This document shows, piece by piece, positions 3,434-44,142 of a DNA stretch of 64,000 nt. The notes beneath the pieces were generated by a model, which did not search any database, had not been told where the DNA came from, and saw only the letters and a program-made list of their open reading frames with translations. The first letter of the stretch is position 1, and the number at the start of each line of letters is the position of its first letter. Made by a program: the position numbers and the translations under genes. The DNA lies in sequence record MW879341.1. One strand, 5' to 3'.

Positions 3434-3814
3434 ATGGCACGTATTCTGATGGGCTACCCGGGTTCTGGTTTATCGACCTGGGTGAAACAACAACCCGATG
3501 AGAGTAAACCTATCTGGCAAACGGAATTTGATGCCAGTGCAGTTGCAGGTGACGCCGTAGTCTGTATTCAATACAGCTACGATAACATGCAAGCTGTGGC
3601 AGCGGCAGGACTAGGCGTTACAATGCTCTATCCTGCACCAGAGTGTATTCCTGAGTATTACGACCGCATGATTGAAGAAGGTGTTGAAGAAGCAGACGCT
3701 CAACTGTTTGCTGCCACCATCGATTCAGACCTGCGTGACTTACGGGAATCAGAGAACCCCAACGAGCACCACGTAATCTTAGGCCGTGGCGAGTACTGCT
3801 ACGACCGTCTGTAA
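3434..3814 (+). CDS. hypothetical protein with degenerate P-loop
   Basis: ILMGYPGSGLST resembles Walker A but lacks the Lys. Confidence 0.6.
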   Translation: MARILMGYPGSGLSTWVKQQPDESKPIWQTEFDASAVAGDAVVCIQYSYDNMQAVAAAGLGVTMLYPAPECIPEYYDRMIEEGVEEADAQLFAATIDSDLRDLRESENPNEHHVILGRGEYCYDRL

Positions 3815-3816
3815 CA

Positions 3817-3843
3817 GGGGAGGACTTCGGTCCTCCTTTTATG
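3817..3843 (+). terminator. intrinsic terminator
   Basis: GGAGGAC-TTCG-GTCCTCC-TTTTATG. Confidence 0.85.
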
Positions 3844-3874
3844 CGTATATTTAAAAATTATCATAAGGCATTGT

Positions 3875-4471
3875 ATGAAAAACCTTGGTTTGTTACGTTC
3901 GACGCATTATCCTGAAATCTCAAACAAGCTACTGTACTTACCTTTGGTCGTAGCCCTCGGTATTCAATATACACCTACGTATAACCTGCTCGTACTCTGT
4001 AGTCTCTTTGGTTTGATGATAGCAATATCCTACTGGACGATTGTTAAAGACCACAGACAGTTGCGACAATTCGGATTACACCGACCCACTAAATGGTGTG
4101 CGTTGCTATTCCCACTCTACGTTATCTGGCGTAATAGAGAAACGGGTGGCGACAGGGCACCGACGATTGCGTTGATAGTCTATTTGATACTCAGCGTATG
4201 GATTACGGTATCTGGTACTAACAAAGCGATACACGATACCCTTGAAATTACCAGTTGCGTTAAGATCATAGAGCACCAACTGAGTGCTGGTCCACGGGAA
4301 CCCATCTGTCAACGCGTTACATTGACGCATGAGGACGAAGACAATAAGTGGACTGGTTATGCGCTACTGTCTGATGAAGCCACCATACCTGTTACGGTCT
4401 GGGGTAATCGCGGTGTGCGTAAAGTAGATGCAGAACTTTCTCCAGGTGTTATCACCACTATCTTTAATTAA
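3875..4471 (+). CDS. putative membrane protein
   Basis: several hydrophobic N-terminal segments, soluble C-terminal domain. Confidence 0.65.
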   Translation: MKNLGLLRSTHYPEISNKLLYLPLVVALGIQYTPTYNLLVLCSLFGLMIAISYWTIVKDHRQLRQFGLHRPTKWCALLFPLYVIWRNRETGGDRAPTIALIVYLILSVWITVSGTNKAIHDTLEITSCVKIIEHQLSAGPREPICQRVTLTHEDEDNKWTGYALLSDEATIPVTVWGNRGVRKVDAELSPGVITTIFN

Positions 4472-4489
4472 CGTTAGGAAACCATTACG

Positions 4490-4858
4490 ATGATCAGCGA
4501 ACCACATATCACTACCATTGAAAACATCACCATCATCAAAGACATCAGTCGCGACGAAGACGGTGAATGTTTCATGCGCTGCCGCGTTATCTTCAAAAAG
4601 CCGGACACTGATAAAGAAGTTGTCCTGTCTGACCTGAAGCTGGCGATCACCACTGAGTTGGATGACTTTACTCCGACCAAAGCACTGATCGCGACCTGGC
4701 TTGGCCTTGGTCTGTTCGTTCCACTGACTGCACGTACTGAAGTGTTGTCTGACTACGGTCTGTCTAAGACTGGTTTCCAGGTTACTCCTTATGCTATCGA
4801 AGTTGCACACGCTTACGCTGTGCTGACCGAAGGTAAGGACATTACCGAAGCCATCTAA
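4490..4858 (+). CDS. hypothetical protein
   Basis: AGGA SD, strongly biased codons, terminator after. Confidence 0.75.
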   Translation: MISEPHITTIENITIIKDISRDEDGECFMRCRVIFKKPDTDKEVVLSDLKLAITTELDDFTPTKALIATWLGLGLFVPLTARTEVLSDYGLSKTGFQVTPYAIEVAHAYAVLTEGKDITEAI

Positions 4859-4869
4859 ACAACCCCATC

Positions 4870-4899
4870 GGGGCAGGAAAGTCCTGCCCTCTTTTTTTT
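4870..4899 (+). terminator. intrinsic terminator
   Basis: GGGCAGGA-AAG-TCCTGCCC followed by T run. Confidence 0.85.
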
Positions 4900-4910
4900 G
4901 GAGACGCGCC

Positions 4911-5099
4911 ATGTATGTACTGTCAATTTACTTGCTGGTAGCCGCCTTATTCGATCTGTCCATTAAACGCAGTGCAAGGCGTTCTCGCTATCGCACACAA
5001 CCCCGTTGGTATGAAACCACAGGCCGTAGTATCGCAGCGTTAGCATGGCTTCCAGTAATGATCTACGTACTCTGGAAGAAACTTCGAGGTCGTCGGTAA
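4911..5099 (+). CDS. small basic membrane protein
   Basis: GGAG SD; two hydrophobic stretches, Arg-rich. Confidence 0.55.
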   Translation: MYVLSIYLLVAALFDLSIKRSARRSRYRTQPRWYETTGRSIAALAWLPVMIYVLWKKLRGRR

Positions 5100-38675: not shown

Positions 38676-40784
38676 ATGGCACTGAAACGTAACGAGTCAG
38701 ATAAGGCCGACGGGTCTTCTGGCATGGGGTCATTAGGGGACGCGCTTTTAGAAGCCGCCGCCAAGAAACCAGACAGCGCCGTAGCTGGCGAATTGTTAGC
38801 TGGAGGTGAACGTTCACTGGAGTCGGGTAATGCACAGGTAATTAACCCAGAGCCTGTAGCACAACCAATCCCAGCGGCTACACCAGTACAACCAGCGCCT
38901 ACCGCTCGTCCTGTACAACCAGCAGCACCAACCCATAACCACAATTCACAAACTTTCGAAAGCAAGGAACAAAAGATGGAACAAGTTAACGCATACTACG
39001 GTCTGGACGATTCTTACTCTGGCCTGAACCGTACTCTGGGTCTGACCTCTGGCGCTGTAGACGTCAACGAGTTCAAGAAGATCGCAGAGAGCATCCTGGA
39101 AAACGATCCGGCTGCATCTAAAAGCTCTTACGGCAAGCCTTCCTTTATTACTCTGGAAGCTGCTGCCCTGGGTCTGCCGTGCAACGCACTGGCGATCGTA
39201 ATGAACGCACGTAACGGCGCACAGAACGTGCCGCTGGTTTACACCCTGCTGATGGAACCATCAGAGCCGCTGGCACCACGCGAATACAATGTAGGCAACT
39301 ACACTGTTGAGCTGAAAGCTGTAACTGGCGATATCTACGGTGACGACTTCGCTCGTGCTGTGATGAACCACGTTAAGAAAGTGACCAACTCCGATGCCGA
39401 TCCAATCGACACCGGCGCTAACGTTGTACCGAACGGCCTGAGCCTGAAGGACGACGAAAACGCAACTCACGTTCGCAGCATCCTGTTCTTCGCATTCGGC
39501 GCACTGAACACCGTTTCCGACGTAATGTTCGGTACTCAGAAATTCCTGAGCCTGAAAGTGTCTGGCCAACAGCAGCTGCTGGCTAACATCAACTGGTCTG
39601 GCAAACAGCTGGAAACTGCTGCGGGTAACCCTATCCGTGCAGACATCGTGCTGACCACCACCAAGCGTGCTCGCTTCGACCGTAACCAGACTGCTGCACA
39701 CGCTGCCGCAACTCGTCCGGTAACTGCGCTGGCTGCGTACATGGACCTGTTCTACGCACCACCGCGTATCGAAGAGAACCCGAACCAGCAGCAGTACGGC
39801 TACAGCAGCTACGGTATCCCTGCGGATGCTAAAGTAATGTGGTACCCACGTATGGTTATCACTCGCTGCCTGCCACTGGGCAAAGTGATCAACGTTGGTG
39901 AACTGCTGCTGACTCTGGCGACTGCTACCGTTATCGGTACCAAGCACACCTGGATCAACGGCTTCCGTCCGGTGCGTGGTCAGGTTGGTATCCACGACAT
40001 CGGTGGTCTGGGTTGGGAACATGAGTTCGTGAAAGGCCAGCTGGCTCCTATCGATTCTCAGGACCCTAAATTCAGCCTGCCTGGTCTGCTGAGCCAGACT
40101 GTTGTAGACAACCTGTTCTACAGCATGGACATCGACGAAGTTGGTGACCTGACCTGGCTGGAAAGCTCACTGCTGGCAATTGCCCGTGGTGGTGAAGAAG
40201 CTGCTGCTGCGAACGATTACATCATCGCCGCTGCAAACGCACTGACCGATAACAAGTTCTCTGAGTGCTACGACGTGACTCAGCCGATTCTGGTTAACGA
40301 AGTCGTGCGCGTACACACTGGCTACTACATGGAAGGTGACCAGAAAGTTGACCTGCGTAACATCGACCACCTGGCAGTCCTGAACATGACCGGTAAGAAC
40401 GGTTTTGGTCTGGCACAGAAATGGTCTAACGCGCTGGTAGACTACCCGAACAACAACGCACTGTCTCAGCAGGAACGTCAGAACATCCTGGGTGAGCTGG
40501 CACCGAACGCTGTGATCAACGGCTACGCATCTCGCGTGACCTTCAACTCCGCGTTCCTGTTCGGTCTGGCGTCTGCGATCTCTAAAGCTGGCACCACTCT
40601 GGTTGTCAACGACGATGGCCGTCAGGCTACTCAGGAAGCTCGCGTGACTGCATCTTACGCGTCCTTCGGTCAGGGTAACGTGTACACCACCTCCCTGGTA
40701 TCTCAAGGTTACGGCAATGGTCAGAACCGTTCTCCGCGTGCTGTACAGACTCCTGTGTCTGGCAACATCTGGGGCAACATCTAA
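38676..40784 (+). CDS. chmA: chimallin (phage nuclear shell protein)
   Basis: 702 aa, strongest high-expression codon bias in the window, P/A/Q-rich N-tail, RADIVL..YMDLFY..PRMVIT core, position between DNAP and nvRNAP beta-prime as phiKZ gp54. Confidence 0.85.
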   Translation: MALKRNESDKADGSSGMGSLGDALLEAAAKKPDSAVAGELLAGGERSLESGNAQVINPEPVAQPIPAATPVQPAPTARPVQPAAPTHNHNSQTFESKEQKMEQVNAYYGLDDSYSGLNRTLGLTSGAVDVNEFKKIAESILENDPAASKSSYGKPSFITLEAAALGLPCNALAIVMNARNGAQNVPLVYTLLMEPSEPLAPREYNVGNYTVELKAVTGDIYGDDFARAVMNHVKKVTNSDADPIDTGANVVPNGLSLKDDENATHVRSILFFAFGALNTVSDVMFGTQKFLSLKVSGQQQLLANINWSGKQLETAAGNPIRADIVLTTTKRARFDRNQTAAHAAATRPVTALAAYMDLFYAPPRIEENPNQQQYGYSSYGIPADAKVMWYPRMVITRCLPLGKVINVGELLLTLATATVIGTKHTWINGFRPVRGQVGIHDIGGLGWEHEFVKGQLAPIDSQDPKFSLPGLLSQTVVDNLFYSMDIDEVGDLTWLESSLLAIARGGEEAAAANDYIIAAANALTDNKFSECYDVTQPILVNEVVRVHTGYYMEGDQKVDLRNIDHLAVLNMTGKNGFGLAQKWSNALVDYPNNNALSQQERQNILGELAPNAVINGYASRVTFNSAFLFGLASAISKAGTTLVVNDDGRQATQEARVTASYASFGQGNVYTTSLVSQGYGNGQNRSPRAVQTPVSGNIWGNI

Positions 40785-40868: not shown

Positions 40869-42188
40869 ATGCGAGTAACGGGCATAACGGCCATGATCGA
40901 TCTGAACGATCTACCTATCGAATACGGTATCTGCCAAGAGCTGACTGACTTCGATCGTGAGATTGCAGTATTGACATGTTCACCAACCATTGTAAATGAC
41001 ATAGACTCTTCAACTTTAGAGGGAAAGGAGAAGCTCAATAGTCTACTGATCACGAATTACAAAGGTGATGCTCTACCTATCTTACCAACATGTGACTGCG
41101 GTAAATACCAAGGTGAACAGTACGTTGGTACGGTATGTGAAGAGTGTAACTTTATGGTTACTTCACCCACTGAGAAACCCATTGAATCGAATGTTTGGAT
41201 TGCAGCACCAGAAGGCGTACTGGGGTTAATTAACCCGGCGTTCTGGGCGATGTTCTCTAAACTACTGACAGTGAACAACACCAACATCTTAGAGTGGTGT
41301 GTAAACTCCAGTTATCGTGCTCCAGTGGAAAACCTGCAAGTCTTCGATATCCTGTCCAACTACATCATGCGCGATGGGCAACGATTCAAGCGTGGTCTGA
41401 ATAATTTCATCGATAACTTCGATGGGATCATTGAATTGTTAACTGATGGTAAGACCCTCCGAAACATCGCACCTGCTATGCGCGTTAAGATGCGTGAGTT
41501 CTGTGTGATGAACCGTGGGCGTATTTTCTGTCAGTATCTACCAATCCCCAACAAGCTGGCAATCGTCATGGAGCATACCCCAACAGGTACATACTCCAAC
41601 GAAACTGCCGGTGGTACCGCACTGGATGCTGTGCGTAGTATCGCCAGTATTTATGCAACGGCATTACCCGTAACTGCTACTAAGAAAGAAAACCGCTGCG
41701 TATTAGCAACAAAGCAACTAGCGGGCTATTTCTCAGTACAGTTCACTACCTCGTTAGGTACGAAGAAAGGATGGAACCGTAAACACGGCGTAGGTACACG
41801 ACAGGACTTTAGTTTCCGTTGTGTTATCGCCAGTATCACCGAGCCACACTACTATGAAGAATGTCATCTTCCATGGGGTGTAGCAGTTGGTATCTTTACG
41901 GTACACTTGTCTAACTTCTTCCTGAAGCAGGGATTGGCACCGAATGAGATCGAACGTCGTCTACATTTTGCGGTAACGCATTATGACGAAGAGATCGACG
42001 GAATGTTCAAGAAGATCATTGCTGACTCAGATGGACTGGGTCCAGCTATCATCCTGAACCGTAACCCAACCCTGTCCAGTAAGTCGATTCAGTTGCTGCA
42101 AATCACCAAAGTCAAGACGGATGTCAAAGACGTTACTCTTGGTATCTCTGTATTGATTCTTAATAGTTTCAATGCCGACTTTGACGGT
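40869..42188 (+). CDS. nvRNAP beta-prime N-terminal subunit, exon 1 (phiKZ gp55-like)
   Basis: CDCG..CEEC Zn site, RQDFSFRCVI, NRNPTL, ends at NADFDG; 440 codons. Confidence 0.9.
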
Positions 42189-43564
42189 AGAGCGTTGCCG
42201 TCGTTAAACGCTTCTAATTGCTGGGAACTCTTGAAGGTAGCCTAACCACAACGCAATCCGTAAAGGATAATCGTGACGGTTTGAAAATAGGCTATTATGA
42301 GACAATCAGCAGCGAAGTCCTTCTTGTATTACCAGCTGGGTAGGATACTCGGTGAGAGGGATGTGCTCAACGGCCATCGAAAGCACGCAGACGCAATGTC
42401 TGTGGAAGCAAGTAGAGTAGGGGAAACCCGAAACGAAGTGACATGGATGTAAGATATGGTCTAAAGTACGGTGACGTGCGTTGGTGATGTCTGGAAGCAT
42501 CACCGAAGTCGAAAGACTAAGCTACCAACATGTTCTATGGAGACACTATGGAGTTAAGAACCATACCCGGTACAGCTGGGTATTCAGCTTCGCGAGACGG
42601 TCGGATATTCAACCCTGACGGTATTCAGCGAACTGAATACACTAACGGGGATGGGTACCTTACCGCATCCGTGAAGTTAACAGATGGTCGATGGCAAACC
42701 TTCGGCATACATCGGTTAGTAGCACTAGCATGGATAGAATGTCCGGGTAATCCAGACGACTATACCGTCAATCACATCGATACCGATATCACTAATAATG
42801 ACGTCGATAATCTGGAGTGGGTAACGGCTCAGGTTAATAACCTACATGCGAGTTTAATGCGGTTAGTTGTGGATAGACCAACAATCTACATGCTCGACGT
42901 CGACGGAAGTTATAGCTTCATCGATAACTTGCATATGGCAGCACAAGTGTTGTCAGTGGATGTTGGATTGGCTTGGGATATGGTACGTGATGGAATTGAA
43001 GTGAATGGGGCTAAGTTATTCCCAATCACTAATCACACCGTTCTACCCGACCAACTGAGAAAACCATCAATAGGTAGTGGTGTAGACGCCATACTGGTGG
43101 AAGTTCCGGTTAAAGTCAAATCTATCAGCACAGGGTGCGTTCTGAACTTTAAATCAATGGGAGCGGCAGCAACGCACTTTGGTGTATCTGCTAGCCACAT
43201 CTATCAGGCAATCTGCAAAGATAGGGTTCGTGTGTTCAAACGCGACTACGTCGTTGTTAAGTCTGAGGATGAATTCCCAGAAGTGGATGATGCGACAAAA
43301 GAGAAAAGTCTGGCAGCTGTGGGTAAGGCTACTTGGGGATGGAACAGTGTCAGTAAAGTACTGTATGTAACCGATAGCGCTAGCCAACTTATAAAGCTAA
43401 CTGGCCTCAGTAAGAAAGCGGTAACAACGCGACTCAAACGCGACGGTTATGGCGAATTGGGTGATTGGATATTTTCATATGAAGATCAGTCCAGTCGAAT
43501 CTTAGAAAGAATAAAGGGTTCCAGCCCTTCTTGATAATGAACAATGTTGGTAGTACATATTCAG
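42189..43564 (+). mobile_element. group I self-splicing intron (IA-like) with homing endonuclease
   Basis: 5' exon ends GACGGU pairing with IGS GCCGUC (42197-42202); P AATTGCTGGGAA (42216), Q AATCAGCAGC (42304), R/P7 GGCCA (about 42372), S AAGATATGGTC (42451); terminal G 43564; AGAGCGTT pairs with exon 2 GACGCTCT (P10). Confidence 0.9.
42548..43534 (+). CDS. intron-encoded HNH homing endonuclease (NUMOD4-HNH plus HTH-type repeats)
   Basis: GYSASRDGRI, HRLVALAW, VNHIDTDITNNDVDNLEWVT; GGAG SD before ATG 42548 (upstream ATG 42530 lies in a stem). Confidence 0.9.
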   Translation: MELRTIPGTAGYSASRDGRIFNPDGIQRTEYTNGDGYLTASVKLTDGRWQTFGIHRLVALAWIECPGNPDDYTVNHIDTDITNNDVDNLEWVTAQVNNLHASLMRLVVDRPTIYMLDVDGSYSFIDNLHMAAQVLSVDVGLAWDMVRDGIEVNGAKLFPITNHTVLPDQLRKPSIGSGVDAILVEVPVKVKSISTGCVLNFKSMGAAATHFGVSASHIYQAICKDRVRVFKRDYVVVKSEDEFPEVDDATKEKSLAAVGKATWGWNSVSKVLYVTDSASQLIKLTGLSKKAVTTRLKRDGYGELGDWIFSYEDQSSRILERIKGSSPS

Positions 43565-43738
43565 GACGCTCTCAATGCGAAACTGATTACTGACCGGTAC
43601 ATGCGTCGTATGTTGGAACCACTCCGTCCACACGTAGGTGTATTGGATGTAGGTGGTCCGCGTAAGATCTCAGGCAACATCGCATTGCCAGCACCAGTAT
43701 TAGCAACAGCTGCTAACTGGTTGTACGGCGACGACTAA
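43565..43738 (+). CDS. nvRNAP beta-prime N-terminal subunit, exon 2 (phiKZ gp56.1-like)
   Basis: begins DALN, restoring NADFDG-D in frame; PH..L....P..ISGNI.LP...ATAANWL. Confidence 0.85.
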   Translation, partial: DALNAKLITDRYMRRMLEPLRPHVGVLDVGGPRKISGNIALPAPVLATAANWLYGDD

Positions 43739-43743
43739 AACTC

Positions 43744-43771
43744 AGGCAGGAGGAAACTCCTGCCTTTTATG
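43744..43771 (+). terminator. intrinsic terminator
   Basis: AGGCAGGAG-GAAA-CTCCTGCCT-TTTATG. Confidence 0.85.
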
Positions 43772-43788
43772 CGCTAAGGAATGAAAGA

Positions 43789-44142
43789 ATGGGAAATGTG
43801 GACGGGTTACCTATCGTGACGTATAACTTAGGGTTACTTCACAAGGTGCGTGATTGGATGGTGGGGACCAACGCCGTGCGCCTGAATACTATCGATGTAC
43901 AAAGTAGTGACAGCGTACCCGCTGGTGAAAGTAATATCTTCGAGACTGGTCTGCGTGCCTTTGACAGCGAGTCGTTTCTTGATATTGAGAACATTATCAA
44001 AGCCTTCAATCACCCACACGTAGATGATCACGTTTGCCATGTGCATGTGGATCGCATTTACATGGTCCAAGATGTTCTGGGTATTCGCATCCATGTGCGT
44101 AGTATCGTACATTACGTCCCAAAAACAAAAACTAAGGAATAA
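43789..44142 (+). CDS. hypothetical protein
   Basis: AAGGA SD. Confidence 0.65.
   Translation: MGNVDGLPIVTYNLGLLHKVRDWMVGTNAVRLNTIDVQSSDSVPAGESNIFETGLRAFDSESFLDIENIIKAFNHPHVDDHVCHVHVDRIYMVQDVLGIRIHVRSIVHYVPKTKTKE

Follow-up and report, generated by a model that had tools for sequence, protein, structure and literature searches.

The locus analysed here raises the question of how an RNA polymerase subunit can be made from a phage gene whose catalytic motif is cut in two by 1376 nucleotides (nt). It lies in a 64,000-nt stretch of sequence record MW879341.1, referred to below as the window, which is 100% identical to Erwinia phage pEa_SNUABM_54 (MW879341.1, 272.6 kb). A sequence-only reading of the window had placed a group I intron at 42189-43564, between the second and third aspartates of the polymerase catalytic triad: every coordinate given for these boundaries was found to be correct, and they are now backed by profile, structural, comparative and natural-allele evidence. 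We take this segment, with a probability of roughly 0.9, to be a mobile phage-type group I intron with extra helices between P7 and the 3' strand of P3 (P3'), inserted in the homologue of phiKZ gp55.

Two exons of one polymerase subunit gene

Exon 1 ends with the codons AAT GCC GAC TTT GAC GGT at 42188 and exon 2 starts with GAC GCT CTC AAT at 43565; excision of the intervening 1376 nt (A42189 to G43564) joins ...NADFDG to the third aspartate and gives, from the ATG at 40869, a product of 440 + 57 = 497 amino acids (aa). The two exons are contiguous against both the PHROG 2987 profile (RNA polymerase beta subunit), whose positions 1-421 lie in exon 1 and 422-477 in exon 2, and the solved phiKZ gp55 (7ogp_A, deposited as PHIKZ055 fused to PHIKZ056.1), in which exon 1 extends to chain residue 440 and exon 2 covers residues 441-494: the proposal that splicing-out restores NADFDGD in a 497-aa product is thus borne out with exact coordinates. 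Similarity to the gp55 family is full-length and includes the catalytic DFDGD motif, which phiKZ gp55 carries (PMC8287921) and which is whole here only once the intron is removed. These similarities identify the host gene as that of the beta'-N subunit of the non-virion RNA polymerase (nvRNAP), homologous to phiKZ gp55. The gene is unbroken at exactly this point in Xanthomonas phage Xoo-sp14 and Serratia phage Haymo, and 127 of 255 records in a sampled tblastn survey align over the site in one piece, which suggests that most chimallivirus genes are uninterrupted at the DFDG/D site (a slash within a motif marks an insertion point).

Continued beyond exon 1, the reading frame runs for 19 codons into the insert, encodes unrelated residues and stops at 42243-42245: protein splicing or read-through therefore cannot account for the structure, and on the strength of this stop and of the ribozyme features of the insert, an intein and translational bypass were both rejected. 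The same frame is central to a further alternative, namely a decayed intron that no longer splices, with the subunit made as two chains, a 459-aa read-through product (to 42245) and the 64-aa product of the open reading frame (ORF) at 43544-43738, which would associate non-covalently and share the aspartate triad. GenBank annotates exactly these two ORFs, and division over several polypeptides is already known for jumbo-phage polymerases; the known break in their beta' subunits, however, comes after the double-psi beta-barrel domain and not within the motif (PMC7598289). In addition, relatives and the solved phiKZ subunit have the motif on one chain, and the proposed chains would carry unrelated residues, 19 at the end of the first and seven (MLVVHIQ) before the aspartate of the second. 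We consider such a two-chain subunit very improbable, and return to it below in light of the ribozyme itself.

Ribozyme elements and comparative support

Relatives of the intron were sought by low-stringency blastn and by a pattern scan of IMG/VR, the latter giving 35 loci (L numbers are our labels for loci). By blastn, the 5' part of the intron was found in Serratia Moabitevirus phages and Aeromonas phage D3, each time within the orthologue and following the same codons, GAC GGT, and smaller Aeromonas and Vibrio phages showed the core in different genes; in IMG/VR, at least eight gp55-type genes, besides that of the 2050HW genome, are cut at DFDG/D or DYDG/D (L017, L024, L026, L033, L035, L038, L041 and L042). 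Across 15 same-site introns, P1, P3 and P7 pair wherever the strand could be located (13-15 introns each). P1 of the window has the U-G splice pair, and its pairing is kept throughout the set, including C-to-U changes that preserve it. An RNAalifold consensus of nine cores contains P4, P5, P5a/b, P6 and P7 and comprises 38 pairs, 24 of them showing compensatory changes; the P3/P7 pseudoknot of the P3-P9 core is likewise marked by covariation, the same P3 positions pairing as CCUCUC/GAGAGG and GCUAUC/GGUAGC, among others. For P3 of the window, the pairing proposed by the minimum-energy fold (GCUUCU/GGAAGC) was rejected in favour of CGCUUC/GAAGUG, because every relative has P3' directly after GAAAC and before P8.

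P7 is GACUA/UAGUC in all 14 relatives, and the window alone is non-consensus (GGCCA/UGGUC), with one compensated change from U-A to C-G and one from A-U to G-U, a pattern indicating that the helix is still under selection. P8 is present with 3 bp, the shortest of the set; L026 has 4 bp, and the remaining introns have roughly 5-10 bp. The extra helices that follow P7 include an element, GUAGAGUAGGGGAAACCCGAAAC, common to the window intron and that of Serratia phage 2050HW. Such helices between P7 and P3' are typical of phage introns of subgroup IA, to which the window intron may belong. GNRA-capped P9 helices also occur in Totoro, D3, L024 and L026. At the 3' end, 11 nt and then the terminal guanosine (G43564) follow the 3' arm of a long-range stem, and P10 comprises 8 bp. 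P1 with its U-G splice pair, P10, P7 with its G-U variant, the stems after P7 and the terminal G can all be read, as in the sequence-only reading.

Based on these elements, splicing would proceed as follows. The pre-mRNA would fold such that the exon sequence GACGGU pairs with the guide GCCGUC as P1, placing the U-G pair at the splice site; attack after U42188 would come from an external guanosine that P7 binds; P10 and the long-range stem (42522-31/43544-53) would bring the 3' splice site and G43564 to the core; and exon ligation would yield GACGGU/GACGCU, restoring the magnesium-binding NADFDGD motif in the 497-aa protein. Within the loop that the long-range stem closes lies the gene for an I-HmuI-like HNH endonuclease, probably translated from AUG 42548, which would nick intron-less alleles of co-infecting relatives, whose repair would copy the intron in (homing). 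We infer the activity, target and homing of the endonuclease in this scheme.

Related cores were also seen outside gp55-type genes cut at this site. L016 and L018 (IMG/VR, 118 and 225 kb) have the same P1 guide after ...ADFDG in polymerase genes only 22-24% identical to exon 1 of the window, and may represent the intron lineage at the same motif position in another polymerase paralogue or a distant lineage. In smaller Vibrio and Aeromonas phages, related cores lie in other genes (L009:2447-2791; L008:2440-2779 and 4408-4620; L007:2183-2758): Vibrio phage 150E35-1 has one in its type IIA topoisomerase region, there are two matches in each of two loci, and none is annotated as an intron.

Does the intron splice?

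Several observations weigh against the interpretation as a spliced group I intron. At the gathering score of 50 bits, Rfam Intron_gpI (RF00028) had no match anywhere in the window; by E-value threshold it matches 42148-42481 with 45.8 bits (E 4.7e-10), still below the gathering score. The group I model thus identifies the intron by significance, but its score of 45.8-47 bits lies just under the curated 50. A scan of the whole record gave 47 bits (E 8e-12) as the sole group I match in 272.6 kb. Related introns all lie above the threshold (58-90 bits), leaving the window with the lowest score of the set; the low value is explained by the near deletion of P8, the P8 positions of the Rfam model being deleted in the window alignment, and by long insertions. 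Furthermore, a 3-bp P8 and a G-U beside the guanosine-binding pair in P7 are unusual and might make for a weaker ribozyme, and a long-read transcriptome contained no spliced reads for the predicted phiKZ introns under its conditions (PMC10914365). Splicing, including guanosine-dependent catalysis, is a prediction from the DNA sequence in the present case. The last point concerns contigs of four public runs, of DNA or unlabelled library type, that were placed on 41900-43800: in run X2, one contig joins 42188 directly to 43565, skipping exactly 1376 nt (depth 5.5), alongside an intron-containing contig (depth 8.3). As X2 shows two exon haplotypes at similar depths, we read it, without certainty, as a DNA mixture of intron-bearing and intron-less phage, such that the joined contig would represent an intron-less allele and not splicing. 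The same E-value scan also returned snoR10 and RAGATH-32 matches, both at chance level.

A sub-threshold Rfam score and a P8 reduced to 3 bp are also what favours the decayed, non-splicing intron introduced above. Against decay, every core helix is retained and P7 carries a compensatory change, while P1, the 8-bp P10 and the terminal G are all precisely placed. Another possibility, which we hold to be unlikely although less so than decay, is that splicing is conditional or needs assistance, from an RNA chaperone of phage or host or from a maturase-like factor, such that nvRNAP output would be gated by splicing efficiency. Here the 3-bp P8 and the G-U in P7 (such a P7 is found in only one of 15 same-site introns) and the low score fit readily, as does the study without spliced phiKZ reads (PMC10914365); moreover, nucleus-forming phages are described as separating transcription from translation (PMC12908238), so that ribosomes cannot aid folding. 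Yet no cofactor emerged as a candidate, the fold appears self-sufficient from its long P10 and GNRA-capped peripheral helices, and L026, the nearest relative by endonuclease, also has a short P8 (4 bp), which indicates that a short P8 is tolerated in the lineage. We therefore retain an intron that splices as the preferred interpretation.

Long-range stem and HNH endonuclease

The arms of the long-range stem enclose the ORF and are exactly complementary. In shuffled sequences, such a stem arose between the two short ORF-flanking zones in 13 of 5000 trials, and about one perfect 10-bp repeat would be expected by chance anywhere in 1.4 kb, according to our estimate. Perfect stems of unrelated sequence occupy the same place in four of the five other ORF-bearing same-site introns (Totoro 13 bp, L035 14 bp, L038 10 bp, L042 13 bp), the one exception being L026 with only 6 bp at this position. 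Because equivalent stems with unrelated sequences recur in this way, the ORF-looping helix is, on comparative grounds, real. The sequence-only reading had further noted that the stem buries the first ATG of the ORF: exact pairing and the looping-out of the ORF hold, whilst the buried ATG is probably not the start of the endonuclease, and the link of the stem to translation appears less clear than was supposed.

The ORF has two candidate starts, ATG 42530 inside the stem and ATG 42548, which lies 17 nt past it and is preceded by GGAG at 42539-42542. I-HmuI and all homologous endonucleases begin with M-x-L/I-K/R-x-IPGT, corresponding to ATG 42548, and ATG 42530 was rejected as the first residues of the homologues align to ATG 42548; the endonuclease thus probably starts there. 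The reading frame is intact and scores 32 bits against Pfam HNH_3 (cut-off 24.8), and the match to I-HmuI (1u3e, E 3e-6) runs from MELRTIPG with the H...N...N positions kept. In the C-terminal, DNA-binding half, only faint NUMOD1 and I-TevI-like matches below threshold were seen. Full-length homologues in the same intron position are encoded by Serratia phage Totoro (30% identity), Klebsiella phage Miami, Pseudomonas phage HHBS47_1 and Vibrio phage 5 TSL-2019, and those from IMG/VR in the same position are 36-48% identical. The closest endonuclease is that of L026, with 48% identity versus 33% between the host genes, a contrast that hints at lateral movement. In L026 (IMGVR_UViG_3300012942_000069, minus strand 3466-5088), exon 1 is split again by a gap of ~360 nt near residue 399, and this gene probably has two introns.

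Comparison with known introns

Group I introns with HNH endonucleases have been predicted in phiKZ polymerase genes since 2002 and are cited for gp55 and gp180 (PMC11512511, PMC10914365). We derived the structure of the phiKZ gene from the genome of the phiKZ-like phage fMGyn-Pae01 together with the PDB chain: in fMGyn-Pae01 (L005:4117-6849), two group I introns, of 87 and 77 bits in Rfam, divide the gp55 gene into three exons. For the phiKZ gene itself, Ceyssens et al. 2014 reportedly obtained RNA-seq evidence for the gp55 intron. In fMGyn-Pae01, the middle exon codes for only ~40 residues and an HNH ORF lies 5' of the core in each intron. The first intron of the phiKZ type is located ~60 codons upstream and the second between N and A of NADFDGD (...LKAPNADFDG in the PDB chain), 15 nt upstream of the window site. 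The equivalence to phiKZ gp55/gp56.1 drawn in the sequence-only reading is therefore correct as to gene and similar intron type; the site, which that reading left to be compared, differs: there are two introns in that gene, and even the nearer one occupies another position. In common with the window, the phiKZ introns (PHIKZ055/PHIKZ056/PHIKZ056.1, via fMGyn-Pae01) lie in the same gene beside chimallin, have a similar core and insert in or beside NADFDGD, and their HNH ORFs belong to the same broad family (~30-37% identity in the N-terminal nuclease domain); they differ in that their ORF is 5' of the core, whereas that of the window is in a 3' peripheral loop. Pseudomonas phage U5 has the same N/ADFDGD site as the phiKZ type. 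In Vibrio phage C-ZP2022 (L013:2167-3507), a break of ~1.3 kb near NAD/FDGD, partly N-masked and hence approximate in position, appears to mark yet another insertion point, the third, within the motif.

Close counterparts are the same-site introns of the Serratia Moabitevirus phages 2050HW, Yaphecito and Totoro, Aeromonas D3, Klebsiella Miami, Pseudomonas HHBS47_1, Vibrio 5 TSL-2019 and the IMG/VR contigs, which share the GAC GGT/GAY insertion point, the same P1 guide and a homologous core; those with an ORF also have a full-length HNH homologue in the same place, the 3' loop that a long-range stem closes. They differ from the window in sequence, with 30-48% identity in the HNH protein and 24-37% in the host gene, and several are ORF-less (~300 nt). 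In the PhiPA3 gp210 intron (PMC11620839), a group I intron with HNH endonuclease also lies beside the catalytic aspartates of a chimallivirus RNA polymerase subunit, although in the gene of the virion-enzyme beta subunit and at a different site; for gp210, experiments have demonstrated that the phiKZ gene is nicked and that a competitive advantage results (Birkholz et al. 2024, PMC11620839), both of which would be predictions for the endonuclease of the window. I-HmuI of the SPO1 DNA polymerase intron aligns with the window protein from the first residue of its N-terminal HNH domain, but has 174 aa versus 328 aa and a different host gene; going by the titles of Landthaler et al. cited in PMC11620839, this nicking enzyme is encoded in an intron and comes from a virulent phage. 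The window intron thus belongs, without having been annotated, to a class of mobile introns that is widespread in jumbo-phage polymerase genes and has already been recognised. Specific to pEa_SNUABM_54 are the variant P7, the minimal P8, the evidence that the site is polymorphic today, and the exact insertion point, which many phages share but phiKZ does not.

Natural alleles at the insertion site

Close relatives of the phage are present in two public runs of unlabelled library type and in several metagenomes. Besides the intron-less allele suggested by X2, run X1 contains an intron 98.8-99.7% identical to that of the window next to an exon 1 segment of only ~90.5% identity. In runs X3 and X7 (food and gut metagenomes), exon segments ~90-99.6% identical to the window are combined with different inserts that end exactly at 43565, that of X3 being ~650 nt long, which suggests that introns have replaced one another at a single site in near relatives. 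Amongst close Serratia phages the intron is present in some and absent in others. Together with the X2 junction and the intron of X1, better conserved than its exon 1, this pattern lends indirect support to homing. Intron-less Haymo (L011:601-642) reads GAT GGC GAT ATG CTC GGT at the site, and the intron-bearing Moabitevirus gene (L004:3472-3483, 3780-3795) GAC GGT/GAC ATG TTG GGC; the two differ by several synonymous changes right at the homing site, compatible with co-conversion of the flanks or with a cleavage-resistant allele.

An intron-less allele, an intron of ~99% identity beside an exon 1 of ~90%, and two different inserts sharing one 3' boundary lead us to a tentative view, which we put forward with less than even confidence: the magnesium-binding motif may be an intron hot spot with at least three insertion points (N/ADFDGD, approximately NAD/FDGD and NADFDG/D), its NADFDG/D site may be in active turnover in present-day relatives of pEa_SNUABM_54, and the endonuclease may be a current weapon between co-infecting nucleus-forming phages.

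Locus and annotation

The gene directly upstream of the polymerase gene encodes chimallin, the phage nuclear shell protein, in the same order as phiKZ gp54/gp55; for this reason, pEa_SNUABM_54 is, as judged by gene content, a nucleus-forming, chimallin-encoding jumbo phage. GenBank shows four separate hypothetical proteins at the locus (40869-42245, 42297-42452, 42530-43534 and 43544-43738) in place of the spliced gene, as the sequence-only reading had remarked of the ORF track. The second of these (51 aa, pEaSNUABM54_00272) extends from P5 to P8, entirely inside the ribozyme core, and almost certainly does not represent a gene. A GC-rich 9-bp hairpin at 43744-43765, 6 nt past the exon 2 stop, probably marks the end of the transcription unit, its terminator score being obtained on the minus strand only. 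The features of the locus are collected in Table 1.

Table 1. Positions of the features of the interrupted polymerase locus in the window, with the evidence for each.
Feature	Position	Strand	Evidence
Chimallin (phage nuclear shell protein) gene	38676..40784	+	Pfam PF25677 E 1.3e-38; PDB chimallins 7sqq, 8igg E 2e-26
Exon 1, nvRNAP beta'-N subunit gene, 440 aa, ends ...NADFDG	40869..42188	+	PHROG 2987 E 1.8e-125; 7ogp_A E 4e-67
P1: exon GACGGU (42183-88) / guide GCCGUC (42197-202), U42188-G42197 at 5' splice site	42183..42202	+	Sequence; minimum-energy fold; 15 same-site introns
Group I intron, 1376 nt	42189..43564	+	Rfam RF00028 45.8 bits; run X2 contig joins 42188 to 43565
P10 5' strand AGAGCGUU, pairs with first 8 nt of exon 2 (43565-43572), 8 bp	42189..42196	+	Sequence
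P3 5' strand CGCUUC, pairs with GAAGUG 42435-42440	42209..42214	+	Pairing table, 15 introns
P4-P5-P5a-P5b-P6-P6a-P6b domain	42218..42366	+	RNAalifold on 9 introns; same helices in minimum-energy fold
P7 5' strand GGCCA, pairs with UGGUC 42457-42461; guanosine-binding helix	42372..42376	+	Comparison with 14 relatives
Extra helices from P7 to P3' (P7.1/P7.2-like), hairpins 42387-42403 and 42420-42429	42377..42434	+	Minimum-energy fold
P8, 3 bp, ACA-UGGA-UGU	42441..42450	+	Comparison with relatives
P9 (GUACG-GUGA-CGUGC), P9.1 (42481-42506), P9.2 (AGUC-GAAA-GACU)	42466..42518	+	Minimum-energy fold
Long-range stem 5' arm, pairs with 43544-43553	42522..42531	+	Arms exactly complementary
HNH homing endonuclease gene, 328 aa from ATG 42548	42548..43534	+	Pfam HNH_3; I-HmuI (1u3e) match; homologues in same intron position
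Long-range stem 3' arm	43544..43553	+	Inverted repeat; minimum-energy fold
Terminal intron guanosine (omega-G)	43564	+	Sequence; G in all 9 other same-site introns with 3' end read
Exon 2, 57 aa + stop, starts with third catalytic Asp	43565..43738	+	PHROG 2987; 7ogp_A E 2e-7

Implications

What GenBank lists as four hypothetical proteins is in content one essential polymerase subunit gene, a ribozyme and an endonuclease gene. The same mis-annotation was found in every related phage record examined, with none of the same-site introns annotated there, and correct gene models are needed in order to compare jumbo-phage polymerases and to express the nvRNAP subunit. Transcription of the middle and late genes is carried out by the non-virion enzyme in phiKZ (PMC10914365), and from phiKZ biology we infer that middle and late transcription would depend on splicing in pEa_SNUABM_54, as the sequence-only reading had proposed: if the intron is spliced, the catalytic subunit of the expected middle and late enzyme would be made only after RNA splicing. 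The polymorphism seen in public runs makes the locus convenient for testing homing and intron-mediated competition in nucleus-forming phages of a plant pathogen, the principle of such competition being already established; if the tentative view of active turnover is true, the endonuclease would be a weapon like that of PhiPA3 gp210, in this case directed against the enzyme responsible for middle and late transcription.

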